Below, piece after piece: positions 2,580 to 60,794 of a DNA stretch of 64,000 nucleotides. Numbering within the stretch: position 1 is the first letter of the stretch; each line of letters starts with the position of its first letter. Made by a program: the position numbers and the translations under genes. Source of the stretch: Utricularia gibba (taxonomy: Eukaryota > Plantae > Magnoliophyta); contig NEEC01000007.1 in NCBI GenBank assembly GCA_002189035.1, forward strand, positions 3,100,001-3,164,000, written 5' to 3'. Below the pieces are notes generated by a model, which did no database searches, was not told the DNA's origin, and worked only from the letters and a program-made list of their open reading frames with translations.

Positions 2580-4301
2580 TAGGGATGTTATTGATGGTGA
2601 TTCTGCAAGTGCATAGAAACCGTCAATGTAATAAAATAAGATCGTATCCACAGGAAATTGTTATCGGAATTTTCTTTTCAAATAAAAACTCAAAAAGACT
2701 GAAAAGAAAAGGAAGATTTGGGTTTAAAAACAAGAAGAAAAGTGGCATTGGACCTGGGATCCATCTTGCTAAAAACTCGCCCAAACTTGTGTGTGTAAAA
2801 CCTTGAAGACTGATGTGTTTGCACAAGTTCTGGGGTATTATTCTAAAATAGTGCTACTCGGTGATCGTTATAGCACCGTCCCTCGTTTAGTGGGATTATG
2901 GAATCAACCACGCCACCAGAGCCATTTCACCTCTTGTGATAACTCATGTTTTCCCCACACCCAAATCTAACCCCTACACCTCACACCTCGCAGACAGATT
3001 AGACATAATGTGTCTTACCAACGATGTCCGATTGAGCCCTTCTCCTTAGGTGCTTGAGGCCAACCTTTGATTCTCCCACACTCCCTTAGGGATATATGGT
3101 ACTAAAGATCATGTTGTTAAAGAAAACGTTGCGAAAAACAGAATCAAACCTCAATTTAAATATCGAAAAACATAGTAAAACAGTCACACGCACAGGACTT
3201 GTGCAAGCAAGGCTTCACCGCAGATCCTCAGCCGCAAGCGCCTACACGCGCAGACTTGAATCTAACATGAAAATAGACACGAAAATAGGAAAAGTACAAA
3301 GGAAAAGTGGTCAAAGATGTTTCTAATGGTTGAAAGGGTGGGGTATTTATAGGAGAGTAAATCCAAGTCTTCGTATTGAGCTTATTCGATGGGCTTAGAT
3401 AAGATCTTCTATCTAAATCTTCTATCCAAATCTTTGAAGATCTTCTTCACATCTCTATCTTATCCACGAATCTTAGACCAAATCTTCATCGTTTGACCGA
3501 GTCTTGGGTTGGGATTCGTGACCCATTAAGTCCATAATTTGGTGGATCTTTTTTATTCTCAAATTGATCCAAAAGTACCCTAAAAATCCACAAAATACAC
3601 TCTCTCCATAAAGATCAAAGTAGTGTGAAAGATGCAAAATCAATTGAGAATAATGTTTTGGAACAACACTCAAGAGTAGTGAAAGAACATGTTTTGGAAC
3701 GACACAAAATCACTTATCATTATATCGAACGAATGAACATGAACAACTATGTTTGTGTTCGTTTGTTTAATTTTATCAAACAAAAATTTTTTTCATATTC
3801 GTTTAATTAAAGTTCACGATCGTTCATTGACTAATATAATATATTTATATTTTAACATAAAAATAAATAAATTAATATTTTAACATAAATATAAATATAA
3901 TATTTTTAATGCAAATTAGTATTTAATATATTTTAATTGAGAAAATTGATAAAAAAAAATCATTAACAACTTAACTACTAACACAAAAAATAATTTTGAA
4001 CATTATATATATTGTAGAATAATTATAGTATGTTTATATATTGATTAATATAATATATTTCATATCAAAATATATACTTTTAATATGATATTATATATTA
4101 TAATTGAACAAAGTCGAACATAATCGAATATTGATGTTATTTGTGTTCGTTCAATAAAGTAATTGAATATAGATTTTGTCTGTATTCGTTTGTTTATATT
4201 ATTCAAAAAAAATTGTTTATATTATTCAAACAAAAATGAATGATCTTAATTGAGTCGAACACAATTCAAACACGAGTTGTTCGTTCGTTATAACATCTCT
4301 A
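2580..4301. mobile_element. Non-autonomous hAT-type MITE inserted in copia gag
   Basis: TIRs TAGGGATGTTA (2580) / TAACATCTCTA (4301); flanks CTTACCAT vs TTTATCAT (6/8, decayed 8-bp TSD); subterminal AACGAAC/GTTCGTT repeats; AT-rich core. Confidence 0.75.
2592..3719 (-). mobile_element. Solo LTR (gypsy, Athila-like termini) inserted in the hAT MITE
   Basis: TGAT...ATCA termini with TTAT on both flanks; removing it restores the MITE end TAGGGATGTTATATCGAACGAA; homologous (inverted) to 31201-32280, e.g. shared terminal TGATAAGTGATTTTGTGTC. Confidence 0.8.
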
Positions 4302-31200: not shown

Positions 31201-32280
31201 TGATAAGTGATTTTGTGTCACTTATATTTGTGTGTTTTGTGATTTTTCAGAACGAATTTGGAATAATTTGAAGGATTTTCGAGCTACTTTGATGGAGGCT
31301 AAGATTTGGTCTGTCCAGATAAAGACTCGGTCGAAGATTCTCGGATAAGATAAGATTTGTATCTTATCTTGGAGAAATTGGATCTCATCCTAGAAGATTT
31401 GTATCAAATCTTCAAAGATTCGGATAGAAGATATGATGCGAGCCCATCAAAAAAGCTTAATAAATCCCCACCATTATATAAAGATCCAAACGCGAAGAAC
31501 TAAGGGAGTCAAGGGTGGACGACCAGAGAGTCAATCTAGGGTTTAGAGTCGAGTCTAGTATGTTTTGGATTCCTTTCTCTTCGTTTTTCATCAACTTTTG
31601 TTGTTTAGAGTCAAGCATGCGCGTTTGAGCGCTTGCGGTTGAGGATTTGCTGTGAAGCCTTGCTTGCGCAAGTTATGTGCGTGTGATTGTCTTACCATGT
31701 TTTTCAGCATTTAATTTGAGGTCTGATTCTGTTTTTCGCAACGTTTTCTTTACCAACGTGATATTTAGTACCATATAGCTCTAAGAGAGTGTGGGAGAAT
31801 CAAAGGTTGGCCTCAAGCACCTAAAAAGAAGGGCTCAATTAGACATCGTTGGTAAGGTATATTCTGTCTAATCTGTCTGCGAGGTGAGAGGTGTAGGGGT
31901 TAGATTTGGGTGTGGGTAAAACATGGGTTATCACAAGATGTGAAATGGCTCTGGTGGCATGGTTGATTCCATAATCCCATAAAACAAGGGACAATGCTAT
32001 AATGGTCACCGAGTAGCACTATTTTAGCATAACACCCCAAAAGCTTGCGCAAGCAGGTCAATTCTCAAGGTTTGCACACACGCAAAGGCAAGTTTCAAGT
32101 AAGGTAGATCTTAGATCCAAGGCCACTTTTCTTATTCTCTTCAAAACTAAATCTTTCTTTTGTTTTCGGTCTTTTTGAATCTTTATTTGAAAAAAATATT
32201 CCAATAACAATTCCCTGTGGATAGGATCTTATTTTATTATTTCGACGATTTCTGTGCATTTGCAGAATTACCCTAAATCA
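31201..32280 (+). mobile_element. Solo LTR (same family as 2592-3719), no TSD
   Basis: TGATAAGTG...TAAATCA termini; extended homology to the reverse complement of 2592-3719; flanks ATCAC / CCTAG do not match. Confidence 0.8.
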
Positions 32281-40397: not shown

Positions 40398-40902
40398 TGT
40401 TATGGGTGAAAATCAGCAATGGGATTAGAACCGATCTTTACTTCGTGAAAATGGCTGGATGTTCGATTTCGGGTACGGTTTGAATGTTCGATCTTTATCG
40501 AAATAAAGAGAGGTGAAGACTTTTTATGTAGAAACCGCCAAAGGACGAGAAAACCACGGAGCTACCGGAGCTTGCCGAAGAAAATCTTCACTAGACGGAG
40601 ATGAGGGGAGAAAATACAAGTTGGAAAGTTAAGGATCGAACCCCATTCTCTTCAAGATTTATTCTCTTTATAGAAGAGGTCGATATGACCGAATCCTGGA
40701 ATCTGTAGACACTGGTTGCTTTCTGCACCTATTGTACGCACTGCGACTCTACTCCTGGATAACCGCCGCCTGCTCTTCTATTGCCATAATTCGACTACTT
40801 TTCAGTCTATCCGAAACGGCCACTTCTGACATACCCTGATAGTTATCGGTTTGTCAGCCTGCGACAGGGACCGATTACCTATATCCGATTTATACCCCAT
40901 CA
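40398..40902 (-). repeat. 3' LTR of the Tat element
   Basis: Direct repeat of 53745-54290 with many substitutions and an about 35-bp indel. Confidence 0.93.
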
Positions 40903-41399
40903 TTCATAGAGATTTCATGGGTTGGTTCTGGGTCGGTTCTATGCCAACCCAGAACCGACCCAACTACAAAGACAAAGACCCAGAACCGACCCAGACCCAA
41001 TTAAGAACCGATAGACCCAGAACAACGGTTCTTTATCGGTTCTCGGTCGGTTCTGGGTCCTTACTGGTTCCGGCTTTTACTAAAAACATTGAATTTGAAA
41101 GCTTTCAAACAATATAAGAATAATGTATTTAAAGGCACATAAAGCTTAGAAACACTAGGAAAAATGTTCATACAAATTAAAAGGGCTACGTTTAGTTTTG
41201 ATACAAAAGTAGGGCTATTTCACACATTTGAACACACATGTTTGTAAAAATCACATTGAAAACAAACGTTTCCTGGTATTTAATTGATTTGATGCAAATA
41301 TTTTCATAAATATAATTTTGAAACAAACGTTTGTCAAAACACATTGTTTTCAACACAAATGTTTACAAATAAATCTTCTCAAACACCCCCTTCTCAGAC

Positions 41400-41810
41400 A
41401 CACTCACGATAGATATGGGTGCTTGGAAAATGGTTTCAGGTATCCTCACAACATACTCTCTTAAACTGTCTCAAATACTCTTTCCCAGACACTCGTATAA
41501 GAGAAGTGGGTGCCTACAAATGGTCTTACCCATTTTTTTCAGACACCCACACAATGCATTGTTTTGTAGGTGCAGTCCAACTCTCTTTACAAACACCCTC
41601 TCGAGACACCCACATGAGGGAAGTGGGTGCCTAGAAAACTGTCTCAAATACTCTTTCCCAAACACCCATATAAGAGAAGTGAGTGCCTAGAAATGGTCTT
41701 ACCCACTCTTTCTAGACACCCAGACAAGGCATTGTTTTGTAGGTATCGTCCAACTCTCTTTCCAGACACCCACACGAGACAATGTGGGTGTCTGAAAAAT
41801 GGTCTAAGCA
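41400..41810. repeat. About 173-bp tandem repeat (about 2.4 copies) with GGGTG/CACCC sub-repeats inside the hAT
   Basis: CTGTCTCAAATACTC at 41466 and 41639; GCATTGTTTTGTAGG at 41556 and 41729 (period 173). Confidence 0.85.
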
Positions 41811-42091
41811 TCACACAGAGATAATATGTTATTTATTATATGGTTTAATAAATAACATATTTACATTATTTATATTTTAATAAACATAACCAAGGATCGA
41901 ATTCTTTTGATTTTTTCTCCAAATTAAAACATGATCCGAGTTCAAAAAACCGAACTTCACACTTCAGTGGTAGATAAGCTATCATTAATGTTCTCATCTT
42001 CAATCAGTTCATCTTCAAGCAATGAGATTTGTTCCATATCTGGATCACAAAAAAATAAAATAAGATCAAATTAGGCAATCAGAAAATATTA

Positions 42092-44236
42092 TCAAATAGT
42101 GATAATAAATAATGCTTCAAGCTTACCCTTGATCTCATTCCGTAGCCAATATCTAGTGCACATTAGTGCTTCTAGAATATCTTCCTTCAACCTACTACGA
42201 AGAGTGGTAACAATTTTTCCACCAATACTAAAAGCAGATTCTGATGCTACCGTAGAAATAGGAATAGCTAGAATATCACTTGCCATTTTCCTTAATGTAG
42301 AATAAGTCACATTGCCACTTATCGACCACCAATTAAGCACATTGAAATTTTCCATTCCTTGCATGATCGGCTCTTTGAGATAGTAGTCTAACTCTGATTC
42401 AAGGGGATTTGAAACAATTCTGAATTCTTTAGCAATGAACCGATCATACTTCGACAAAGTGGATGATCCAGATCTACTCATAGTAACCGAACTAGATGCA
42501 AAAACATGGTCAGCCGCCTTCAAAGATGATAAACTCGAAGTAGAAGTATCTAGAGACTTTTATTGTTTTAAAAGATCTCTCACACTCTTCAACACTTCTT
42601 CAATATGAATACTAGCATCTTTGCCATAAATAAAAGGGAAATAGAATTCAATGAGTTTCATCTTGTACCTTGGATCCAAAACCGCAGCAACTCCAAGGAT
42701 TAAATGACAAGTGTCCCAATATTTGGAGAACTTGGCCATCATCTCTTCTGCCATTCAAGAAATGGTCTCATCTGCACTCTTAACCCATTCATTTGGTTGA
42801 ATCTTGATTTCACAAATTGTAGGAAAAAATAAGTTGGTAGTGGGGTGAAGAGTTTGTGAAAACAAGAGAGTAGCCTTATAAAAAATCTCTAATTTGTCAC
42901 AAATCTTACTAGCTTTGAGCCAATCATCTTCAATAGGAAGATCTTTGTATTGCCTTTCTATAAGTGCTACTCGTGGAAACACATCTTTATAAAAAAATAG
43001 CAGTTCGCAGCATCAAATATATCGAATTCCAGCGAGTCTTGCAATCAAGTGCTAGCTTCTTGTCACCATCAATAGCACATTGGTTTGCAGCATGATCAAA
43101 TGTTTCAACTCTCTTTTGTGAAGCCGTCCAAAACACAATACTCCGACAAATTTTTTCAATTGCTCTCTCAATCTTAGACAACCCAACTTCAACAATTAAA
43201 TTCAAAATATGTGCATTACAACGCATGTGAAGTACCTGACCACCAAGAAGCAAATCTTTTGTTGAAAGCTTTAGGAGAATCAATTCCATCATAAGATCAT
43301 TTGTTGAATAATTGTCAACAATAATTGTAGACAACTTCCAATTAATATTCCACTCAATAAGTGATTGAAGCAACACATCTGAAATTACTCCAGCAGTATG
43401 TGGTGAAGGGACAAACAAATATGAAAAGACAACAAGTAAATTGAGAGAAAAATCATAAACAAATCATAATGAAAATACTGCTAAATACATTCACTTATTT
43501 AAATGATATTAAAGGAACCTCAAGATACAACTCTGTAGCTTCCAATCTTCATCAATAAAATGTGCCGTAATTGCCATGCATCCTTTCATATTATGATTGG
43601 CTGTCCACATATCTGTCGTAATTGCCACTCGGTTTTTTGTTTTTTGTAACAATGAATAGCACTTGGATCTGTAACTCAAATACATTTGAGTAGTATCCCT
43701 TCTGAGAGAATGCCGAGAAATCATAGAGAATCCAGGATTCAGGCTTGCACAAATCCGATATGCTCAACCATGACCAATGGATAATTATGTAAAACAACAG
43801 CTTTTGTGAGTTCCTCTCGTGCCACTTTGGGATCAAAGTCAAACTTTTCAATTGCACCTTTTCTTCCAATCTGAAGAATAGATTTTCTAATGTCCACTTT
43901 GACTTTTTTCTTGATACAAGTATTATTGTAATGCTTCCAGAGACTTGAGGTGCCATTGGCTGTTTCTGTAGAAATGGTTCTCTTACAATAATTGCATTCT
44001 GCCAACCATTTTTTTTTCTTGTCATCAAAGAATCTCCTAAAATGATTCCAAATATCTGAACTTCGTTTCCTTGTATTATTGCTTTCAGTCTCCTCTTCAT
44101 TCCCGGCTGAGTCTGCTCCTAATCCAGAAGTATAGTCTTTGTCATTAATATCCGTTCCCAACCCTCTTATATTCTGCTCGTCTTCCATAATTTGTGGTGG
44201 TGTGGAAGATACAATATAATCATAATTTGATGCCAT
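42092..44236 (-). pseudogene. hAT transposase (BED zinc finger, DDE core, dimerisation domain), frameshifted
   Basis: BED: IWNHF...AECNYCKR...GTSSLWKHYNNTC; AITTDMWT; IIVDNYSTN; LHMRCNAHILNL; CKTRWNS; SELDYYL...NWW...STVASESAFS; split over several frames. Confidence 0.9.
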
Positions 44237-45296
44237 CTCCTGAAATCTTACAATCAGAATACACAAAATGAAGCTAAACAACACAAATCTAATACACAAT
44301 TAATAATAAACCCTAAATAGAGCAGATAGAAATCGAATCAGTCAAATCTCAACGACCTATCTCAATGCCTAAACCATAACATGCACGACACCAAGTCAGC
44401 AACATGGAAAATCAAAAGACTTCTCAAATCCACAAACCCAAATCTACATGGCTATCTTCGTCGTTGCAAAGCCCCTACTTCTTTCCACAAATATGGGCCC
44501 CATTGTCATTTAATTATGTAAGTAATAATAATAATAAGTGTTAATAAATAATATGATGAAAACATGCTGAGTAAATAAATAATTATTTACATCCCACAAC
44601 CCAACATTCTTAGTGAAAAAATACTATCGGTTCTGGTCGGGTCTGGATATTTTCCCGTAGACCCAGAACCGACCGGTTCTTCATTTAATGGACCCAAAAC
44701 CGACCCAAACCTAGAACTGGTCAGAACCGACCTGAAAAACTGGGTCGGTTCCGATCGGTTCTAGGTCTGGGTGGGTCTTTTGAACATCTCTAATCATTCA
44801 GCCCCTCTGATTTGCCGATATTGGCCTCTTCAGGGTAAGTCGGTGAATTAGAATCACTGCTATACCGATTTTGGGCATGCCGCTTTCCAATGGGTGAGTC
44901 TAAAGCCAATTTATATCGACTTCCATGCCACGCGTCACCTCCAAGGCGCTCCACATTTTTTCCCGCTCGTTTTGGGCACCTCAAGCGACGCACCATTTCA
45001 TCTTCTGAATTCCCCTCTTATAAATATGTGCTTCTCCAGCCATTTCTTCCTTTTGCTTCTTTTCCTGCTCGCGATATTTCTGTGCTACTCGTTCGCCGCC
45101 GCGTGAACCACTGAAAACTGCAAATTCTTCAGGTATCCGCACCTTCTCCATATCTTTTCTTTGATTCCTGGGTTAGTTCGGCGTTCCGTTAGGTTTTTGA
45201 GATCCTCCTCTCCTCATTTCCGCTCCCCCCTGCAGGTTTTTGTTTTTCCTTTGCCCTCTTTGCAACTTCCTCTCCTCTTCGATTCTCGAAAACAAG

Positions 45297-47492
45297 ATGG
45301 ACAGAAAATCTAGCGCACTGAACACCTCTGTAGTTCGTTCCAAGTACTCGATTCCGGAGGAATATATCATTTCTTAGGCCAAGGACGCCCAGATTCCCTG
45401 GGGGTCTGGGGAAAGGCCTCTTCCCCGTTCAGTCTCCCCATCCCCATTGCCTATTTGGAAAACGGCCTCCGATTTCCGCTCCATCCCCTACTCGTTCAGT
45501 TTCTTCACATGTTTGCCATCCCCCTCTATTGCCTGGCCCCGAATTCGATTTTGTGTTTTACTACCTTCTTGTTCTACTTGGCGGGTATGGATCCGGCAAT
45601 GACCCTAGTGGACTTTTTCCAGCTCTTTAAAGTTGCAGTCTGGAAAGCTAAGCCCCCCGACACCCACCACGACTGGTGGTCTTCCTTCATTTGGGTTGCT
45701 CCTCCCATAGGAGCTAGATGGAACTTCCCGATTAAGCCTCCCAATCCCTTTGAGATTAAACCATTCAGCCGCTTTCGTCCTTCTAACGATTCTCGAAGAG
45801 ATGTGTATCAGAGGCTCAACAAATGCTTTGAGAAATACGAGTCCTAGTCCCAAATGCTCTCGCGAGATACATTGACTGCTTGTGAGATCCTTGGCCACAC
45901 TCAGGGCGGGCCATGGTTTGATTTAATCATTCCCCCGGGTTTTGAGTTAAAGTTTCTTCATCTCTTTCATTCTCCACCCGATATCCTTGTCATTTCTAGT
46001 ACACCTCCCACTTCCGATCAAACAATCCCATTTCCATCCGACCCAGTTCCTAAATCTTCTGCTCACCCTTCACCTCAAAAGAAAAGAAAAAGGTTTAAGG
46101 TTCGCATGCAGGAACCTTCTAAAAGGCACAGAGGAATTCAGGTTCTGCCTCCCCGAATTGTAGTATTTTTTATGGCATTTCACCATCCTTTCAATTTTCA
46201 AATGCAGTTGAGGAATGGCACGGAGAACCGCCTTAGAGGATTCGGTGATGGCCCGTTTCATTGCCGAGATGCAAAGGGTGCAAGAGTCTGATACCGCCCC
46301 TTCCCTTCAGGTTTGTTTTATATGAACCATTATGATGGGTTCCCGATTTTTACCTCGTTAACTTTCTTTCTAGGCTGGATCCCTCGAGGCTCATTTAGAT
46401 GCTGGTGATCACGTCTCCGAGGGGGATCAGGTGATCGAGGTCTCCGAGGTTCGGGAGTCCACTCCTCTTCCTCCAATGGGGAAGGGAAAAGAGAAACTCT
46501 TTCTTTCTCCTGATCCTGCTGACCTCCTATTTCTTGGTACGGAACCCTTCTCGGCTGGTGCCTCTACATCGGCTCCCCGAATGAAAGTAGAGGGGATTCT
46601 CCCCCTGCTAATGAGATAAGAGAAGATCCTGCTCTTCCGTCATCTTTGTTTCCCCCTGAGCTGCGAAGGGCCCTGGAAGAAGTGACCCCAAGTCTCTTAG
46701 GGGTCCAGCCAGAGGTCATGCTCAAGGGGATTTGGCAGGTTTTCCTCTTCTGTTTTGGAGTTGTGCGCAGTGCGTTTCTAACTCGACGGTCTTTTTAGGC
46801 TCTGACTTTTGGATGGGGCATGGCCAAGGAGATGGGGTCTCATTCGGAGGAAGTTTCTTGGCTTCAAGCTCATGTGGTGGCTCAGGAAGCCAAGATTAAG
46901 CTGCTGGGAGAGGAAGAAAGTTCGCTGAGAATGATTCTCGGAAAACGTTTCCATCAGGAGGAGGAGTTGCAAAATATAGTAGATGAAATGGGGAAGGCAA
47001 TTGATGATGCCAACTCTGAAAAAGGAAAGCTTCAAAATGCGTTTTGAGGAGGTGGAGGCAGAGCTGAAGCAAACCAAGGATCGTGTTTTGACCTTGGAGG
47101 CCGAGTTGCTTGACCAAGAGGTGTCTCGAGGGAGGCTTTTAGAAGATTTTGTCAACTCGGCTTGCTTCTCCGAGTTATCAGACATCTACACCGGGGAGTT
47201 TGGACTATATCGGCAAAGGCATCAAATTAGCCGGGAGTTTGGACTATCAATCATGGATCCACGCTTCGAAAGGGTCAACCCCTTGACGAAGGATGAGAAC
47301 ATGCTTGATGTCATCGTGGACGTTCATCCTGCTCCTGAATTTGGATTCGAAGCTGATCGGGAACACCTAATTGCACTCATTCGGGGGAGGATCGGGCGGG
47401 AGAATGAGGTCAAGCTGCGGGCGAGGCTACAGGGTCACGTTGGCCTCTTAGTTGGTCCTCCTACTGATCTCTCTCCTTCTCCTGAACTTTAG
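45297..47492 (+). pseudogene. Antisense additional gene of the Tat element (Transposase_28/TRP28-like N-term, basic NLS-like motif, coiled-coil C-term), spliced, decayed
   Basis: AYLENGLRFPLHPLLVQFL...LAPNS; QKKRKR; GT-AG introns 46311-46373 and 46739-46798 whose acceptors open directly into downstream ORFs; coiled-coil FEEVEAELKQTKDRVLTLEAELL; TATAAATA 45019-45026; premature stops and frameshifts. Confidence 0.7.
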
Positions 47493-47689
47493 TTTCTTTT
47501 TCTTTTCCATCACTCTCTTGGAGCTAACATTTTTGTCCCTGATTTGGGGTTTAAACGGCTTGAAATTCCCCAGGTTTGGGGACGTGACTTTGTTCGTTTT
47601 TGGGAGAATTTTCCCCCTCTCGTGTTGACTTGATTACTTTTCCTAATTTGAAGGTTTTTTTTTTTCGCCAACCGTTGGGCTGGGCTTTT

Positions 47690-48560
47690 CGCTTAAGTAT
47701 ACTCGCGCGATTGTTGCTAAGGATGTAACTCGGAACCCGTCTTAGGTTGAGTTACTTCCCTAATTCGAATAGGTCCTCTTCTGGTCAGATCCATGCTTTG
47801 GAGGTATAGTCGGATCTACTTTGGGTGCATTTGCCGTTTCGAGATTCGACAGCACGAACTTTACTTAGAGCTTTTTCGGGGCTTACGTGAATGGTTAGGG
47901 GGAACCAGTGTGCGAGTTGTACCAGGGCTTACCCCTTCTACTAGTGGCTGGGTTTTTGAGATCACGTATTTCGGGGAGAGCCCCTTTTAGTGTATGTGTT
48001 CTAGACACAATCAACTCATTGGCAAACCCAACAGCCCCGATTCAATTTGTTGTGCTCATCGCGAGGCTTAGATTGAGAGGGTTTGCATGGGCTCACTTTA
48101 CTCAGAGGTTATGTATCCTTTACCAACCATTTGGTTGGGCTTTTTTATTTGCCTTAGTCGCTCCTTACGCGAGCGGGACCACTGCTAGGGAAGTGGATCA
48201 GAACCCCTCGCGGGTTGAACGACTTCCCCAATCCGAATGGGCCCTCTTCTGGCCTAAATTCTATTGTTTTAACATGGACGGATTTGCTTTGGGTGCTCTA
48301 GCCGTCTCGAGATTCGGTAGTAAGGTTTGTACCTAATGGCTTTTTCGGGGTTTATATGATCGGTTTGGAGAAACCGGTGCCCGAGTTGTACCAGGGCTTA
48401 CCCTTATCATTGGGGCCTGGGTTTGGAGGAGCACATAATTCGGGGGGAGCCTCGATTTGGTTTGCTATGCCCATCGGGGGGCGCAGACTTAGAGGATTTG
48501 CCTGGGCTTATGTGACACTGTTAGGGCTTATGAATTTGTTAACTCATCTCCGCTTTGGAG
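47690..48560. repeat. About 469-bp tandem duplication in the Tat 3' internal region
   Basis: CGAGTTGTACCAGGGCTTACCC at 47913 and 48382; CCTCTTCTGG, CTTTGGGTGC and GGCTTTTTCGGGG-like blocks recur at the same spacing. Confidence 0.8.
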
Positions 48561-48849
48561 GAATATATAGCTCAAGTGTTTTGGTGAAGAAAATATCGAA
48601 ACCTGTGAGAATTCGTGACGGAGATTGATATTGGGTAGGTTAGGCGTAGAATTCCTTCAGATGTGATGCATTCCATGACCTTGGAAACTCCACGCCATCT
48701 AGCTATTTTAGATGATAAGCCCCTCTTCCGATTGCTCTCGAAATCTGATAAGGGCCTTCCCAATTGCGATCTAATTTTCCCACATGTCTCTGTGGTTGGA
48801 TGCTTTGGAGCACCAAGTCTCCTTCCGAGAATTCTCTTGAGGATACAGA

Positions 48850-51800
48850 TTTGTTGTAATTCTTTTCCATTCTTCTCTGGTAAGCCTCTAATCAGCTGTA
48901 AATACTCTGTCTTTTTTCCTTCAACAACTCTAACTCCAGTCTTCGTAGATCGGCATTTTCCTCTTCGTCATAGTGTTCCACCCTATAGCTCTTCAGTGTT
49001 AATTCGATTGGGCATACTGCTTTCGATCCGTAGACCAATAAGAAAGGGGATTCTTCTGTAGTAGTTCGGGGGGTGGTGCTGTATGACCATAACACCTCAT
49101 CCAGCCGGACTGCTCATGACCCTCCGAAATCCTCAAGTTTGGTTTTCATACCTTGTCTGAGCGTTCGGTTTGTTGCCTCTATGAGGCCATTGCTTTGAGG
49201 ATGATAGATCGAAGTGAAGTTGTGCTTGACGGAATACCTATCTAGGAATGCGTCCATCTCCCCCCCCCCCCCACAACAAACTGGGTTCCATTATCGGTCA
49301 CGAGTTCCCGAGGTACCCCGAATCGGATGAAGATGTTTCTCCACAGGAATCAGATGACGGTTTCTTCTGATATTTTTGCCACGGCTTCTGCTTCTACCCA
49401 TTTGGAGAAATATTCAATCTCTACGATGACAAACTTCCTTTGGCCAGAGGTTTGAGGGAAAGGTCTCACGATATCCAACACCTAGCGATCAAACGGGCAT
49501 GAGTGCGATAGAGTGGTCAGGTTGCTTATCGGTTTTCTCGGTATGTTTGCATGATATTGGAATATCTTGCATTTCTTCACTGCTTCAGTAATGTCTTGTT
49601 TCATAGTTGGCCAATAGTACCCGCTTCTCATTGCCTTTCTACATAATGATCATATTCCGACATGACTGCCGCACTCCCTCTCGTGCAAATTGGTAATAAG
49701 CTCTTGAGAATGTTCTTTCCCGATACTAGCATCCATCAAGGATCTTTGATAGAGAATTCCGTTTACTAGCGTATATCTCTTTGCCCTAATCTCCAACTGT
49801 CGGGCTTCCGATTTATTAGATGGTGTTTCTCCGTTTTGTAAGTATCAGATGTAAGGCGATATCCAATCTTCGAGAAGACTTAGCTGCGAAGAGATGTCAT
49901 TTCCTAGTTGTTGGGTAATATGGTTCATTGTTCGCAAGGCTACTGAAGGTTGATCCCGCAATCGGATCGTCACACTCCCTTCTTTTAACTCTAGAAAACC
50001 TGCGGCAAATCAGGCGAGGCTGTTCGCAGATCCGTTTTCCTCGCGTGCCACATGCGACAAGGTGAACTCCTTGAAATTCTTTGCCATCTCCTTCACCTTA
50101 ACACAATACAAAGCCATTAGGGGGTCATGGGTTTCATACTCACCCGAAAACTGTCCTTGCACTAGCCGTGAATCGGTATAAACGTCGAGCTCTGCAACTC
50201 CAAGTTCCTTGGCCATTTTCATTCCTTCAATCAGAGCTTCGTACTCGGCGACATTATTGGAGGCTGGGCTTTGATCGAGGTTCTCAACCCGAATTCGATA
50301 TCCATTGTGCTTAACTCAACTGCCCATTTCGCTACTCTTCCAGAAATTTCAGGTCAAGATAGAATATTCTTCAACGGCTGATTTGTGAATACATGATATA
50401 CCGATCTTGGAAACACGATTTCAGCTTAGTGGCCGTCATCTTCAGAGCCAAGATGAATTTCTCTGTCACTGCGTACCGGGTTTCGGCCGGTAGCAGAACC
50501 TTGCTCACATAATATATTGGTAGGTGTTTTTCTCTCAAAATGGTTGTCAAGACAGTGTTAACCACAATGGACAATATTGATAGGTAGAGCCACTAGAAGT
50601 GGGGGCGATGAGAGATATTCCTTAAGTTTTTTGAAAGCAGCTTGACAATCCTCATTCCATTCTACCGTGTTCCCCTTTCGCAGAGCTCTGAAGAAAGATG
50701 CCGACTTATCGGCCGACCGAGAAATGAACCGCTGAGGGAAGCCAATTTACTTGCGAGACTTTGATATTCTTTGATCGTTCTTGGGGGTCGCATTTCGCAG
50801 ATAGCCTTAATCTTTGCGGGATCGGCTTCGCTCCCTCTCTCCGATACGTAATGTCCAAGGAATTTCCCACTCTGCACCCCGAAGCAGCATTTCAATGGGT
50901 TGAGTTTTAATCCATATGACCGACATAAAGAGAAACAGGAATCCAGATACGCCAAATGATCTTCTTCATTCACTGACTTTACGATCATATCGTCCACATA
51001 CACCTCCATAGAAGTACCGATTTCGGAAGAAAAGATTTGTTCACCAATCTCTGATAAGTAGCCCCAGCATTCTTCAAGCCGAAGGGCATCGCAACATAGT
51101 AGTAGACCCCATCCTTGGTGTAGAAGGTTGTTTTTGGTTGGTCCTTCTCTGTGACGAAAATTTGATGATATCCATAATACGCATCCACGGTGCTCAGAAA
51201 TCGGGATCCGGAAATGGCATCCACCAGTTTATCAATTTTTTGCAAGGGGTAAGGATCCCTCTTACAACAGACGTTGAGATCGGTGAAGTCGACGCACATT
51301 CTCCACTTTCCTCCGGGTTTCGGGACAACAACTCGGTTGGCCACCCTTTCGGAGTACTGAATCTCCTTCACGTAACTAGCTTCCAGTAGCTCTTTTGTCT
51401 TCTCTTTTATAATCCGGTACTTTTCTTCAAAGAAGTGCCGTTGCTTTTGCCGAACCGGTTTCGCACTCGGGTAGGTATCAATACGATGTTCAGCGATAGA
51501 TCGATCAATGCTTACAAAATTTACAACAGTCCAGGCAAAAATATCAACATTCTCCCTCAAATATTCGGCTAACCTTTTCTCAAACCCGGCGTTTAAGTTG
51601 GTGTCAATGCGCCACCTTTTGTGTATCTCCTAGTACTAATTGCAATGGCTTGTACCCCACCAATTCCATTGCTTGTCTAGGAGGTTCCCGAGGTTCCTTT
51701 TCCACCATCATTATTCTCGGCTTCTTTGTGCAGGGATCTCGACAAGAAGACACATAACAGGATCAGGCGGCTGGTTGGTCGATATCCAACGTACAGATAC

Positions 51801-53716
51801 CCCTTGGTGTTGGAAATTTAACTTTTAGATGCACAGTTGAGGGCAACATACCGAATTGGTTGATGACGGGTCGGCTGAGGATGATGTTATACGAGACCTC
51901 CGAATCCAGAATCAAGAATTCTAATCTTTCGATCCGGTTTCGCCCCGCAGCACTGAATGTCATGGGCAAGGTTATCTTCCCGGCAATTTGTACGTCCCGT
52001 TGATCGAATGCGTATAACTCCATGCGGATAGGATGGATATCTCCTTCTTTAGACGATGCAAGTAACTCGGCGACTTCCTTTTTCATAATGTTGCAGGAAG
52101 ATCCCTGATCGATGAGGATCCTTCTTACCTTGGTGCTTCTGCATATCCCTGTTACCACCAAAGGTTCATTTCGTGTGACTAGGCCGATCGGAATGTCTCT
52201 ACAAGAGAAATTGATCTCTTCCTTTTCCCAAGCAGCTTTCTCAATCTGACCTTTCCCAATTTCGAAGATTTCTCCTCTTCTAGCCTTGTCCACATATCTC
52301 TTCCATGCTTTTTTTGGTTTAATCAATTTTGGTCCCCTCGGATACCATATGGATTTCCCGGACATAGGGGGGCTACCTTGTGTCTGGTTGGCGTTTTTTC
52401 AACTTTCTGGTACATCTTGTTCTCTTTCGAGGTTCAAGCCCCTGCTGGCACGCGGGGTTCCCCTTGCTGGTCTTGGGGGGAACTTCGGATATCGGTTACG
52501 TTCATTCCTCGGATGCTCGTCACGTACCCTCTTTCGTTCCGTTATTGGTACGGGGTTCCGTGTCGTGCTGTTTGCCCCGCCGCCAGCATGATATTGTTCA
52601 ACCATCCTTCTCATTATCCGACAGTCGACAGTATTGTGCCTTGTTGTTTTGTGTATCTCACAATAGGTGTCTGTTCTGGTCGGTTCCACCTGATATACTT
52701 CATGGCGCTTATTCGGCCGGGGGCCTTGTTGGGCTGCACTTCTTGCTGCTAAATCGGACGGATTTCTACATGGCTCTTCATCTCAGCCCTGAGGTCTTCA
52801 TCAACTCAGATGTACTTCATGATTTTCCTTAGCAATTCTCCGAGATTTTTCGGTGGGGACTTAGACAAACTCTGCCCCAGTTTCGATGTTCCTAGAGCCC
52901 GCTTCATTATTTCCACCCTCTCCTTCAAATCCAACTGAACATCCTGCGCTAGGCAGTTGAATCGGTCGATGTATCTTCTCAAGCTCTCTTTTCGGTGGTC
53001 ATACTGAATAGAATACAATGCTGCCTTTGAAGGCAGAGCTTCGATGTTGACAGCGTATCGGGTACTGAAGAGCAACACCAACTCCCGATAAGATCCCGCA
53101 CTACACGGTTCTTATTGCTTGAACCAAGTCTTTGCTCCCTTTTGGAGCGAGCAAGCAAACATCTTACATTTCATGGCTTCCGAATGCCGAACCGTGGCCA
53201 TCCTCATGTCAAAGTGGGTCACATGGGATATGGGATCTCCTTTTCCATCGTACGTGGGTAGTCCGTCGGGGACTCTGAATCCCCTCTCTAGTTCTTCCCC
53301 GATTAATTCATCCGAGAAAGGGTCAAAATGCAGTGCTGGGGTTACCGCTGCTCCTTCAACGCTGCTCTTCAGAGCTAGGTCAATATCGGCCAGAATGTCC
53401 CCTCTCCCAGTGCATACGTTCTAATCGAAGGCATCCCTAAAGCCCCTACTCTCTCTTCTCCTTGGTTACGCCTCTTTCTTCGCAACATCTCCTCCTCGGT
53501 CTCAGATTCGGTCTTAGTGTCCAGGGAATATTCCAGAATCAGGGATTGCTTTTCTACCCGTTGTGCGGTTTCAGGTGTCCTCTCCTGTGCGTTGGAGTTC
53601 AACCTCGAAGGTGCCCTAAAGTCGGAGGAGATTTTCGTCAAAAGGGCCTTCAATTGTTCCCTACTGATGACCATAAGGCCGGGGTCTGGCCTCTGTGGAT
53701 TTCTTGAGTGGAACAA
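48850..53716 (-). pseudogene. Tat gag-pol (gag, protease, RT, RNase H, additional archaeal-type RNase H, integrase), disrupted
   Basis: gag LYSIQY...ESLRRYIDRFN (52806-53081); PR RRILIDQGSSCNIM (51763-52365); RT KWRMCVDFTDLN...MPFGLKNAGATYQRLV, EVYVDDMIVKS; RH EKFILAL; aRH EYEALIEG...YTDSRLV...HVAREEN..AN.LA (50010-50290); INT TTPRTTTEESPFLLVYG. Confidence 0.92.
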
Positions 53717-53744
53717 TAGATCTGCCCCACGGTGGGTGCCAAAA

Positions 53745-54290
53745 TGTTATGGGTGAAAATCAACATTGGGATTAGAACCAATCTTTACTTCGTGAAAATG
53801 GCCGGATGTGTCGATTTCGGGTACGGTTTGAATGCGTGGTTTGATGCGGTTTACCGAAATAAAGAGAGGTGAGGACTTTTTACGTGGAAACTGCCGAAGG
53901 ATGGAAAAACCACGAAGCTATCGGAGCTCACCGTAGAAAATCTTCACTAGATGGAGATGAGGGGAGAAAATACGAGTTGGAAAGTTAGGGATCGAACCCC
54001 ATTCTCTTTAGGATTTATTCTCTTTATAGAAGAGGTCGATCTGATCGAATCCTGGAATCTGTAGATGCCGGTTGCTTTTTGCACCTGTTGTACGCACTAC
54101 GACTCTACTCCTAGATAACCGCCGCCTACTCTGCTATTACCGTAATTCGGTCACTTTTTAATCTATCTGAAACGGCCGCTTCTGACATACCCTGACAGTT
54201 ATCGGTCTGTAGGCCTGCGATAGGGTGTCAGAATACCTTTTTGGCTACTTTTCAGGGACTGATTACCTATATTCAATTTATACCCCATCA
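53745..54290 (-). repeat. 5' LTR of the Tat element
   Basis: Direct repeat of 40398-40902; adjacent PBS at about 53723-53741. Confidence 0.93.
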
Positions 54291-56169: not shown

Positions 56170-57563
56170 TTAGAAAACATAGGAGCAAGCAATAGAAGTT
56201 AACACGGTCATCAACACAATAGAAACGAGGTTCACAGAATTGTTGTCTAGTATGCTGATTCCAGAGATCCTCTTCACCGTCGGCCCCGGTTTTCCAACAA
56301 CCTGCAGAGGTTGAGGTACAGAGATCACATCTTAAGAATTTGGAGGAACCTTACCTCACATTCCTCCCTTCACTGATATGATTTGATTACCTTGTTTCTT
56401 ACGCTGCAGTATCCGCTGTATTGGAGCGTTGCCCCGAGCAGAGAATCTAATACGCTTCCGCAAAGCCCGGCTAAACTCGAAATGGGAATCAGCAGCAGCT
56501 GTTTAAGAGCTACATCTAGGTTGCAGCTGGTGGTGATGAATCCTAGAACAACGTATGTAAGTCCAATCACACCTCCACCAGCTGCAGCTGCTAGAATTCC
56601 TGCTCTTGTTACACCTCCATTTGTGCCCCTTCGAACGGGCTACTAAAAAAGATGGCATACAAAGCATGAGCAATAAGAAGAGAGACAACAGAAAGGTATT
56701 CATCTACAAAATAATGATAAAGCAGAGGATACACTACCTTGAGGGTTGTGATAAGGACTGGCTGCTCGTTGCTGAGAACCCCGAGCTCAGACGACCATGT
56801 GTCCCTGTTGCAACAGCAGTAGTGGCCAATGATACCGCCGGCTAGTGAGGTCAAAAGGCTTGATTCTTTTGAATTTAGACAATAGTCCTGAGTTCCCATC
56901 AACTTCCTGGCGATTGCGGCCAAAATTGTTGCTATCCCACTGTTGGACAGAACTTGTTTCCTGGAAATAACCTCACCATATTTCCAGAAACCGAAGAGAA
57001 AAAAAAGAACTAGAACGTGTAAACAACCATACGAGTCGCATGTGCTTTCAATGCTAACACTTTTTCTAGTTCGTTCCACTTCAGTTATGCAAGAACCTAA
57101 GGAACTATAATCAAAATCCCAGATGTGGATCACTGAATGAACTCTTCTCAGAAGGTAAGCATCACATTGAAACTCATAGAGGCACTTTTTGCTCTCCTAC
57201 AGGGAAAGAGTGTTACCAATTCCGTTGACCACCTTCCTTAAAATCAGCATCAACCTTCTGCTTCTTTTCCTCTCCATACTTTGTGAGGAATGAAGAAGTG
57301 AAAAAAAAGACAAGCAACACTGCTCCAAATCTGACAGTTTATTTCAATGATCTAAGAGAAGAAAGCAGCAGCTCAAGAATTCACTGCACACACCAGTATT
57401 CAATATAAAAAGAAGACCTGTAATTAACTGCTAAATGAGTGGCCATCACGATGACTCCAGAAACAGCCCCGCTAAGATCAAGAGACTTCCTTTTGTATGC
57501 TCTTGCAGCTATGGCAGCTGAAATCACCACAGCAACCACCGGCTGAAAAAAGTTGGATTCCAT
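56170..57563 (-). CDS. PGR: Protein PGR (DUF92/TMEM19 family membrane protein), 5 coding exons, intact
   Basis: MESNFFQPVVAVVISAAIAARAYKRKSLDLSGA / FGAVLLVFFFTSSFLTK...DADFKEGGQRNW / QVLSNSGIAT...HYCCCNRDTWSSELG / PVRRGTNGGVT...GLCGSVLDSLLGATLQYSG / VVGKPGPTVKRISG...LDNNSVN; 5'UTR introns near 57716 and 57883. Confidence 0.92.
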
Positions 57564-57949
57564 CCTAAAATACAAATTGCTTGTTCAGATATCCCCTTTT
57601 ACACCCATTGAGAGTTGTCAGATTTTGAGGAAATGGCAAACAAATCAAAATCGTTCCATGATTAACAAGAGACAGACCAACAATAAATGAAAGCAATGGC
57701 AAACAGATTTCAGATTACCTAACAAGATAGCAAACAAAATTTCAAGTACCATCTTCGCAACAGCACCACACTTAAATAAAAGCTTATTATACTCGAATTT
57801 AGCATTAAAACCAACCAACATGAACTCAAAACACCTTTAATGGTTTCAGCGAAACCAGAACGGATGCCACTGATCACGTTTACCTGAAACGAATCAGAAA
57901 ACAATCCAGCGAAACACCCACTCGTGCTCCGACTCCCTCCACTGGTACA

Positions 57950-58270
57950 GAAATGCATATCGTGATCACATTCCGATCAGCCCACATTTTCGATGGGCCT
58001 GAATGATATGGATCATCCTTGGGCCATAACAAGTTTTTAATTACATTATTTTTATTTGCATATTTGAAAAAAATTAATATATGAGAAATTCAAAGTTTTT
58101 TTTTTTTTCAGCCATTGGTTTAGCCATAAAATACAATGGACGAAATCTTATTATTATAATTAAATTGTCGTATTTATTTATATTTGGTTTTATTGGAGGA
58201 ACAAAAAAAATGGCAAATATTTGCTGGCGGGCACGTGGGTTCTGCGCTGGACTTCACCTATAAGAAATCG
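57950..58270. promoter_or_regulatory. Short shared (divergent) promoter region of PGR and HMGR
   Basis: Site-II motifs AGCCCA/TGGGCC at 57979-58025 on the PGR side; G-box CACGTG 58232-58237 and TATAAG 58259-58264 on the HMGR side. Confidence 0.6.
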
Positions 58271-58352
58271 GCAGCCGGAAGAGCGCATACCTCCCCTCGC
58301 CATTTTTGGATCCTCGATTTACTGCCTCTTTTCCGCCGCAGTCGACGCGACT

Positions 58353-60794
58353 ATGGACGTCCGCCGGAGGCCCACCGTCACCGCCAGAGCTGCAGATCAT
58401 CACCAGAAACCCGAGCCTAGAGCCTCCGACGCGCTCCCGCTCCCCTTGTATTTGACCAACGGCTTTTTCCTGGGTGTATTCTGCGCCTCCACGTACTTTC
58501 TGTACCGTCGCTGGACATACAAGACGCAGAACTCAATCCCTCTTCATTCTCTCACATTCTACGAGCTCTCCGGCGTCATAGGTCTCGTCGCCTCGATCAT
58601 CTACCTCCTCGGCTTCTTTGGGATCGATTTTGTGCAGTCTTTTATTAACAAGCACGAGAATTACGATGACAACCAACGATTTATTCTTGACGAGAACCGT
58701 AACATTCATTGTCCTCTGCCGCCGAAGCCCATTTCCCGGCCGAAAATCGACATGGATCTCCCTGTGGAGGATGAGGAGATCGTGAATCGTGTTGTTTCTG
58801 GTGAAATTCCGTCTTATTCATTGGAATCAAAGCTTGGGGACTGTTTTAGGGCGGCGAAGATTCGTCGTGAGGCAATCCAGAGGCAGACTGGGAGATCCCT
58901 GGAGGGGCTGCCTCTAGAAGGGTTTGATTATGATTCAATTTTAGGGCAATGCTGCGAATTGCCGGTAGGATACGTACAGATTCCGGTGGGGGTAGTGGGG
59001 CCCTTGTTATTGAACGGATGCGAGTACTTGTTGCCCATGGCGACTACCGAAGGCTGCTTGGTAGCAAGCACGAACAGAGGTTGCAAGGCAATTTACGCCT
59101 CAGGCGGTGCAGATTGCGTTCTTTTTCGTGATGGAATGACAAGGGCTCCGGTGGTAAGGTTCCCAACAGCAAAGAGAGCCACGGAACTGAAATTCTTTCT
59201 GGAAGATCCACTCAATTTCGACACGCTATCCGTCATTTTCAACAAGTAAGCAAATCATGCGTTTTGGTTGCCTCCCATTATCTACTGTTTCCATGAGATA
59301 GTTTACAGTTTTCGCCATTTGTAAGTTCAATCCCAGAATTCTTTCCTGTCATATTCAGCATATGCAAAACCAGGGGTTCCCTTTCCGTCTCCATAATTGA
59401 TGTTCTTTATCCATGCATGATGCTTCTTCTGAGTTGCTGAGTGCCCTTCTGCCTTCTGAAATGCTTGAGCACTATTTGTGCAGGTCAAGTAGATTCGCAA
59501 GACTTCAGAGTGTGAATTGTGCCATTGCGGGGAAGAACCTGTACATTAGATTTTGCTCCAGCACAGGTGACGCCATGGGTATGAACATGATCTCGAAATG
59601 TGTTCAGAATGTTCTTGATTTCCTCCGGAATGACTTCCCAGATATGGATGTTATCGGCATCTCCGGTTAGTCCTCCCTTTATGTCTGTTTCTTCCACTAC
59701 TCCCTACAGCTTGGCGCGCACACATACCACCACCCATATGGCTTTACTTTTTTAGTATCTATTTTTCTCCATTTTTTTGCCTCATAGTTTTGAGAATAAT
59801 CAAAATAATAACGATATTTTCACCATAATGTTTCGAAATAAGATTTGTGGTGATCTTTTGGTGGTAGAAGATGTTGAAATTTAGATAATGAACTTGTTTT
59901 TTTATTGAAACTTTAGTTGATGTTTTAGTTAAATGATTTGGATTCTATTTTTTAATTTTCATTCTCGTCTTTCGGAAAATTCATTTTGACAATGTGTATC
60001 TACTATAACCGCAGTCCTTTTGTTGTTTGAGGAGTTGGCTGCGTCATACTTTTACCTTTGCATTCTTCTCTGGGAATCTTGACTGGGCATTGGTATCCTA
60101 ACGCAAACGTTTCTCTTGTGTGTGTATATGCAGGAAATTTCTGCTCAGACAAGAAACCAGCAGCGATCAACTGGATTGAAGGTCGTGGAAAATCAGTGGT
60201 CTGTGAATCTACAATATCCGGAGATGTGGTATCCAAGGTGCTAAAAACAACAGTCGCTGCCCTCATCGAACTCAACATGCTCAAGAACCTGGCTGGCTCG
60301 GCTGTGGCTGGTTCTCTCGGTGGGTTCAACGCGCATGCTGCCAACATAGTCTCCGCAATCTTCATTGCTACTGGCCAGGATCCAGCCCAAAATATCGAGA
60401 GCTCCCATTGCATTACCATGGTCGAAGGCGTCAACGGTGGGAAGGATCTTCACGTATCAGTCACCATGCCCTGCATCGAGGTACATACCTACACCTACCC
60501 ACCTCACTCAAAATATCGGAAGCATGATGATGCAACAATGGCTTTCCGCAGGTTGGCACCATCGGCGGAGGAACGCAGTTGGCATCACAATCCGCCTGCC
60601 TCGACCTACTGGGTGTCAGGGGCGCCAACAAGGAGTCACCAGGTTCCAACTCCCAGCTCCTTGCCAGAATCATCGCCGGCGCCGTGTTGGCAGGAGAACT
60701 CTCCCTGCTGTCCGCCCTCTCCGCCGGCCACCTGGTGAAGAGCCACATGAAATACAATCGGTCCAGCCGGGATGTCACCAAGCTTGGCTCTTAG
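58353..60794 (+). CDS. HMGR: 3-hydroxy-3-methylglutaryl-CoA reductase, 4 exons (58353-59245, 59484-59665, 60134-60480, 60552-60794), intact
   Basis: MDVRRRP N-terminus, [88 protein letters not shown]; internal exons of 182 and 347 nt as in the conserved plant gene structure. Confidence 0.97.

Follow-up and report, generated by a model that had tools for sequence, protein, structure and literature searches.

We analyzed a 64,000-nucleotide stretch of the Utricularia gibba genome (hereafter the window; assembly GCA_002189035.1, contig NEEC01000007.1, positions 3,100,001 to 3,164,000; all coordinates below count from its first letter). Inside a long terminal repeat (LTR) retrotransposon in this window lies a gene that runs opposite to gag-pol. 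An original prediction, made from the letters alone, had taken this gene (44880-47492) to be a spliced and separately transcribed candidate regulator encoded by a Tat/Retand element. We conclude with high confidence that the locus is a dead copy of a known Retand accessory gene, the antisense gene that encodes a protein with a TRP28 domain. Its position, its orientation and its TRP28 domain all agree with what the literature describes for the additional antisense genes of these elements, as had been predicted.

The antisense gene and its host element

The gene occupies the plus strand from an ATG at 45297 to a TAG stop codon at 47490-47492, between pol and the 3' LTR. Read in order, its translation comprises an N-terminal domain with the motif GLRFPLHP (at ~45464), a basic stretch, QKKRKR (~46075-46095), a linker of acidic, proline and serine residues, and a helical C-terminus. 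The N-terminal domain matched TRP28 in Pfam (PF04195, E 3.2e-5), with 24.5 bits for this decayed query, below the gathering cut-off of 26.2. In a phmmer search of 1.84 billion representative proteins, for which a 177-residue TRP28 piece served as query, the best match was P0001 (E 3.4e-9), followed by P0003, P0005 and P0006, all of them PF04195 proteins. Six matches were returned in all, among which the Transposase_28 proteins are the meaningful ones. In the alignments the six conserved TRP28 positions (G, P, L, P-N and F) are kept at the spacing given by Vicient. When the phmmer matches were placed back onto the locus with tblastn, the TRP28 domain alone aligned (E-values there relate to a 4-kb database and call for caution), and beyond TRP28 neither Pfam nor the phmmer library search found any protein similarity for the gene product.

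For the final 169 residues at the C-terminus (piece 46983-47489), AlphaFold, run on the single sequence, predicts a long helix at residues 14-58 with a local confidence (pLDDT) of up to 89; confidence outside the helix is low. Matches of this region to coiled-coil families are weak (E 0.02-0.14, from Pfam). The predicted order of a Transposase_28-like N-terminus, a basic motif and a low-complexity linker was thus recovered, with TRP28 below threshold in Pfam and backed by phmmer, and the putative coiled coil takes the form of a predicted long helix. That a C-terminal coiled coil belongs to one gene with TRP28 is likewise a prediction, which hinges on the candidate splicing model described below.

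The host element lies on the minus strand, with its 5' LTR at 53745-54290 and its 3' LTR at 40398-40902. The two LTRs are 88% identical (blastn and alignment) and have TG..CA ends, and the element is flanked by a 5-bp target site duplication (TSD), CATTT. Once a nested hAT DNA transposon is subtracted, its size is ~10 kb. Four nucleotides past the 5' LTR, going inward, is a sequence starting with TGG that resembles a primer-binding site, TGGCACCCACCGTGGGGC (53723-53744, minus strand, inside the element). We take it to resemble the complement of the 3' end of a plant tRNA-Lys, with one CpG-type change.

Inward from the 5' LTR, the minus strand carries gag, reverse transcriptase (RT), RT_RNaseH, a second RNase H and integrase motifs. 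Within the decayed gag-pol region (48575-53744), Pfam places Retrotrans_gag at 52809-53111, RVT_1 (the RT) at 50665-51629, RT_RNaseH at 50374-50592 and RVT_3 (the second RNase H) at 50013-50315; the integrase motifs lie in fragments at 48706-49650. The element thus has the gypsy-type gene order and, downstream of RT-RNaseH, the second RNase H of archaeal type. Ustyantsev 2015 (PMC4408406) describes this combination of gypsy order and dual RNase H for the Tat clade. We place the element among the Tat/Retand elements of Ty3/gypsy by domain architecture alone, the RT being fragmented. The region between pol and the 3' LTR spans ~3.9 kb without the hAT (from the integrase end at ~48700 to 44797). 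With the antisense gene at 45297-47492, this span fits Retand elements, in which the corresponding region measures 2.9-6.6 kb and carries an antisense open reading frame (ORF) (Vicient 2025, PMC11963269).

The copy is dead, given the divergence of its LTRs, the stops and frameshifts in the antisense gene, the shattered gag-pol and the hAT insertion where the internal region meets the 3' LTR. Even the most favorable exon model leaves the antisense gene with at least two stops (45375 and 45845) and four frameshifts (near 45400, 46210-46250, 46560-46616 and 47040); it is a pseudogene. The copy had been called decayed from the start, without mention of these two stops and four frameshifts. They are consistent with the 12% divergence between the LTRs and with the indels that separate them. 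Stops and frameshifts have likewise split the gag-pol region into numerous fragments. In the TRP28 domain, ~22 residues present in all seven aligned relatives are absent between ...FQLFKVA and VWKAKPP... (45560-45640), probably through an internal deletion.

Candidate introns, promoter motifs and the internal repeat

The candidate exon model, all on the plus strand, starts with coding sequence at 45297-46141, which contains the ATG, the TRP28 domain and QKKRKR and may hold an extra intron at 45916-45999. Candidate intron A follows (46142-46207, 66 nt, CAG/GTTCTG...TGCAG/T, slashes marking the splice boundaries), and then a short exon of 103 nt (46208-46310) that is entered in frame 0 and left in frame 1 through a frameshift. 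Candidate intron 1 (46311-46373, 63 nt, CAG/GTTTGT...TTTCTAG/G) leads into the low-complexity acidic, proline and serine linker exon (46374-46738), which is translated in two frames on account of the frameshift near 46560-46616. The length of this exon, 365 nt, is no multiple of 3, though it lies between two phase-0 junctions. Candidate intron 2 (46739-46798, 60 nt, CAG/GTTTTC...TTTTTAG/G) precedes the last exon (46799-47492), which encodes the helical, putatively coiled-coil region and a C-terminal tail and contains the frameshift near 47040.

Introns 1 and 2 are the two GT-AG segments of the original prediction. Both are present at the positions it gave, and its joined translations, ...DTAPSLQ/AGSLEAH... 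and ...KGIWQ/ALTFGWG..., were reproduced. Where it had noted an in-frame stop in the first segment, we found two (TGA at 46323 and TAG at 46371). Intron 1 is also the most T-rich and GC-poor 60-nt window of the gene, with a GC content of 0.33 against 0.57 in its flanks, and it has a pyrimidine tract and a branch-like motif, TTAAC. The composition of intron 2 departs from its flanks in the same direction (GC 0.45 against 0.55; T 0.45 against 0.24). It has a pyrimidine tract and a CTAAC 17 nt from the acceptor, and its sole in-frame stop is the TAG of the acceptor itself. Candidate A is the third most T-rich and GC-poor 60-nt window of the gene. It has no YTRAY branch motif and is open in frame 0, hence not forced by stops. 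Overall, the most T-rich windows of the antisense gene fall on segments bounded by GT and AG.

These segments were compared with controls. The motif CAGGT occurs six times on the plus strand of the gene and never on its minus strand, and shuffled sequences average 2.2 occurrences (P 0.02). On the plus strand of the gene, a strict screen picked exactly introns 1 and 2. It found none on the minus strand of the gene and none on either strand of the 5.2 kb gag-pol, and when the gene was shuffled with composition kept in 30-nt blocks, two or more matches arose in 1.8% of trials (P 0.018). A relaxed screen, without the branch site, added candidate A (46142-46207) and 45939/45916-45999 for a total of four. 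Across 10.3 kb of control sequence this screen gave a single match, and none of 500 shuffles reached four.

A distant relative offers a comparison. A metagenome scan found one distant 1250-bp locus with a TRP28 gene (L001, contig Ga0134127_10480048). In this locus frame 3 continues into frame 1 only once an 85-nt T-rich GT-AG segment (982-1066) is removed. That segment comes after ...ACGLSSEMPR, about where the window candidate 45916-45999 follows ...ACEILGHTQGGPW. A second GT donor is found at 1205 of the same locus. L001 suggests that short introns may be common in TRP28 genes. In addition, every copy in Ballota nigra 2a and Camellia oleifera 1, two clusters of recent activity, has one direct and two reverse ORFs (supplement of Vicient 2025, PMC11963269), a pattern that a split antisense gene would give.

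We rate the intrinsic signals as strong for 46311-46373 and 46739-46798 and as moderate for 46142-46207 and 45916-45999. Splicing of the antisense gene is plausible on this basis, and the family is probably spliced at the two introns predicted originally. Whether it is also spliced at the two extra introns (46142-46207 and 45916-45999) is a nearly even question that leans slightly to the negative. An intron in the 5' untranslated region (UTR) was predicted as well. Its donor is present (CAG/GTATCC at 45130-45138, donor 45133), with a possible acceptor at 45192 or 45235, but neither version of the segment (45133-45192 or 45133-45235) shows any compositional contrast with its flanks. This leaves the 5' UTR intron unsupported, and we consider it unlikely.

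The region upstream of the ATG (44801-45296, plus strand) comprises the end of the internal region on the side of the polypurine tract (PPT), a CCAAT, the TATA-type sequence TATAAATA, a CT-rich leader and the CAG/GT at 45133, and is the putative promoter and 5' UTR. Both motifs are found where they had been predicted, with CCAAT at 44887-44891, 132 nt upstream of TATAAATA at 45019-45026, which is itself ~220 nt within the internal region. An internal promoter for the antisense gene is plausible, mainly by its likeness to gene23 of the Grande element.

At its other end, the antisense gene converges with pol on a repeat region at 47493-48575. Two diverged copies of ~469 bp (47660-48560) lie in this region, past the 3' end of the antisense gene and before pol is reached. 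Their aligned parts, 47715-47982 and 48183-48451, are 73% identical by blastn and 74% by alignment. The tandem array that had been predicted at 47690-48560 therefore has the 469-bp unit ascribed to it, but only two copies at 73-74% identity, and the duplication was not called by Tandem Repeats Finder (TRF). We saw no enriched short motif in 47493-48575.

Proposed role and alternative explanations

In an active element, the antisense gene would run opposite to gag-pol in the interval from pol to the 3' LTR, and RNA polymerase II would probably transcribe it from an internal promoter immediately inward of that LTR. Short GT-AG introns most likely interrupt the coding region in this family. Each new copy would inherit them, since they lie on the strand opposite to the genomic RNA and cannot be removed when that RNA is spliced. 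The product would be a nuclear protein with TRP28, a basic motif resembling a nuclear localization signal and a disordered linker, ending in a coiled coil that would allow oligomerization. We infer that it would most likely serve as a nuclear regulator whose targets are the DNA, chromatin or transcripts of the element itself.

Several observations weigh against this reading. The TRP28 score lies under the Pfam gathering cut-off, whereas intact relatives reach 44-60 bits. A structural model of a TRP28 relative (P0003, from an 8-sequence alignment; pLDDT 60.5, and near 80 for residues 1-104) gave no Foldseek match to solved folds, and the best Z of a wide VIA-align search was 3.9; since the model matches no known fold, it lends no support to DNA binding. 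Neither the protein library nor the viral contigs nor the metagenome scan yielded a close relative of the antisense gene. Word-index protein searches with the N-terminal and C-terminal pieces gave no match among candidates of 0.55-1.75 times the query length, the phmmer matches to the TRP28 piece included none closer than 42% identity over ~70 residues, and the viral contigs scanned contained no relative. Within the window, tblastn of the gene pieces and blastn found no second copy of the gene. The motifs that stand for the predicted promoter are common ones, as the window holds CCAAT 164 times and TATAAATA 23 times on both strands. Finally, the criteria of the intron screens were chosen once the candidates had been seen, which makes the P-values optimistic; the lengths of all four candidate introns are divisible by 3; and three of the four contain no in-frame stop other than that of the acceptor, so that internal stops force intron 1 alone.

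The points on introns bear on the best-surviving alternative, in which the gene has no introns. It would then consist of separate antisense ORFs or of one decayed ORF, with the T-rich segments as spacers or degenerate coding sequence. Published accounts give separate antisense ORFs without introns; the descriptions of the Retand antisense TRP28 gene mention none (PMC11963269, PMC7264820), and plant LTR retrotransposons generally lack them, save Ogre and EVADE (2025 review). The four segments all have lengths in multiples of three, the reading frame stays open through 46142-46207, 45916-45999 and intron 2 bar the acceptor TAG, and the decay of this copy is sufficient to produce spurious stops. 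Against this, the segments are sharply T-rich and GC-poor, with CAG/GT and YAG/ boundaries, pyrimidine tracts and branch-like motifs. They occur on the strand of the gene alone, above the local-shuffle controls. The 63 nt of intron 1 include two stops, and the distant L001 has its own frame-joining GT-AG segment. On balance, we consider an intronless gene somewhat unlikely, and prefer a gene split by short introns.

The gene might instead act through its transcript. The functional product would then be an antisense RNA that pairs with the genomic RNA, feeds small interfering RNA (siRNA) production, or disturbs transcription or reverse transcription. Such a role was raised by Vicient and Casacuberta (PMC7264820), and the convergence of the antisense gene and pol on 47493-48575 is in keeping with it. 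TRP28, however, is kept with its invariant residues across monocots and eudicots, and this conservation argues for selection on the protein. RNA and protein roles are not exclusive, but we regard the antisense RNA as an improbable functional product compared with the nuclear protein.

The original prediction went further and likened the gene and its neighboring repeats to the anti-silencing modules of VANDAL elements. Under this proposal, the product of a multi-intron antisense gene would be a sequence-specific nuclear factor that binds the repeats of its own family and counters silencing, as VANC does. The inference stands only on a loose similarity of layout and is speculation; by analogy alone, we give a VANC-like factor very little chance.

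Least probable of all is that the TRP28 gene belongs to another nested mobile element, such as the hAT directly upstream of it, even though Kejnovsky et al., as cited in PMC4408406, suggested that Tr28 is the remnant of an inserted mobile element: the gene has the position and orientation that are the norm for Retand. The hAT, which the original prediction had missed, spans 3886 bp on the minus strand (40907-44792) and stands between the 3' LTR and the sequence upstream of the antisense gene. Its terminal inverted repeats (TIRs) read TAGAGAT/ATCTCTA, and its perfect 8-bp TSD, ATCATTCA, is found at 40899-40906 and 44793-44800. It bears GAACCGACCC-type subterminal repeats and, on the minus strand, a decayed transposase with Pfam matches to Dimer_Tnp_hAT (E 1.9e-26, 42095-42559) and hAT-like_RNase-H. 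The insertion point is the exact PPT/3' LTR junction of the retrotransposon, and excising the hAT with one TSD copy makes this junction continuous again. Because the TIRs and TSD bound the hAT at 40907-44792, the antisense gene (from 45297) is outside it; the nested hAT is not part of the gene, and a gene that is part of the adjacent hAT is ruled out. The hAT also contains, at 41463-41781, a 173-bp unit tandemly repeated 1.8 times with 87% identity.

Elsewhere in the window, host genes adjoin the element at 56170-60794, including a long ORF resembling HMG-CoA reductase (58221-59249). Blastn within the window also found an inverted repeat pair of 670 bp with 85% identity (2596-3265 and 31605-32272, 28 kb apart). 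The pair could represent two members of a further repeat family, or else the termini of one large element.

Comparison with known systems

The gene belongs to a well-described group. Among active Retand clusters, 97% contain an antisense TRP28 ORF and about half contain tandem arrays, and Vicient (2025, PMC11963269) predicted DNA binding for TRP28 and proposed a regulatory role; the antisense ORFs of Grande, RIRE2 and Retand have been reviewed (PMC7264820). The copy described here differs from the antisense TRP28 ORFs of Retand-lineage elements such as Silene Retand and rice RIRE2 (PMC11963269) in that it is dead and in that its coding region is apparently split by short introns, a feature absent from that account. 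Its repeat differs as well, consisting of a 469-bp unit in two copies instead of units of 8-100 bp in at least three. The intron-split layout would be a modest possible addition to these systems and no new kind of system.

Nearly all active Retand elements carry the TRP28 protein, and these elements abound in many flowering-plant genomes. The copy analyzed here adds nothing on the function of that protein. It is one more, poorly preserved example, and suggests a spliced multi-exon gene in this plant rather than several separate ORFs. If intact copies and transcripts bear this out, spliced gene models would replace the ORF-based annotation of Retand elements, and full-length TRP28-coiled-coil proteins would become usable for functional work.

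A related published layout is that of Tat lineage VI, in which Tr28 is fused to a coiled coil (Ustyantsev 2015, PMC4408406). As in that lineage, Tr28 is here followed by a putative coiled coil, in antisense at the 3' end of an element with a dual RNase H, the assignment here being by domain architecture only. The maize Grande gene23 is a further counterpart. According to the account of Gomez-Orte 2013 given in PMC7264820, this accessory gene runs antisense to gag-pol within a long 3' internal region, is driven by a promoter of its own and yields a nuclear product. For gene23 the promoter and localization are experimental, whereas here a TATA box, a CT-rich leader and KKRKR are what invite the comparison, which is made from that description.

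Outside LTR retrotransposons, VANC of VANDAL21 (Hosaka 2017, PMC5735166) is also a transposon-encoded accessory protein beside non-coding repeats, and the likeness is an analogy only. VANDAL21 is a MULE DNA transposon and VANC belongs to an unrelated protein family; moreover, VANC binds short tandem motifs, and no such enrichment is seen at 47493-48575. The HBZ gene of the deltaretrovirus HTLV-1, a comparison made by Vicient, is likewise located near the 3' LTR on the antisense strand, and its nuclear product contains a dimerizing helix. It has no sequence relationship to the gene described here, and its promoter lies within the 3' LTR, whereas the TATA-type sequence of the Utricularia copy lies ~220 nt inside the internal region.

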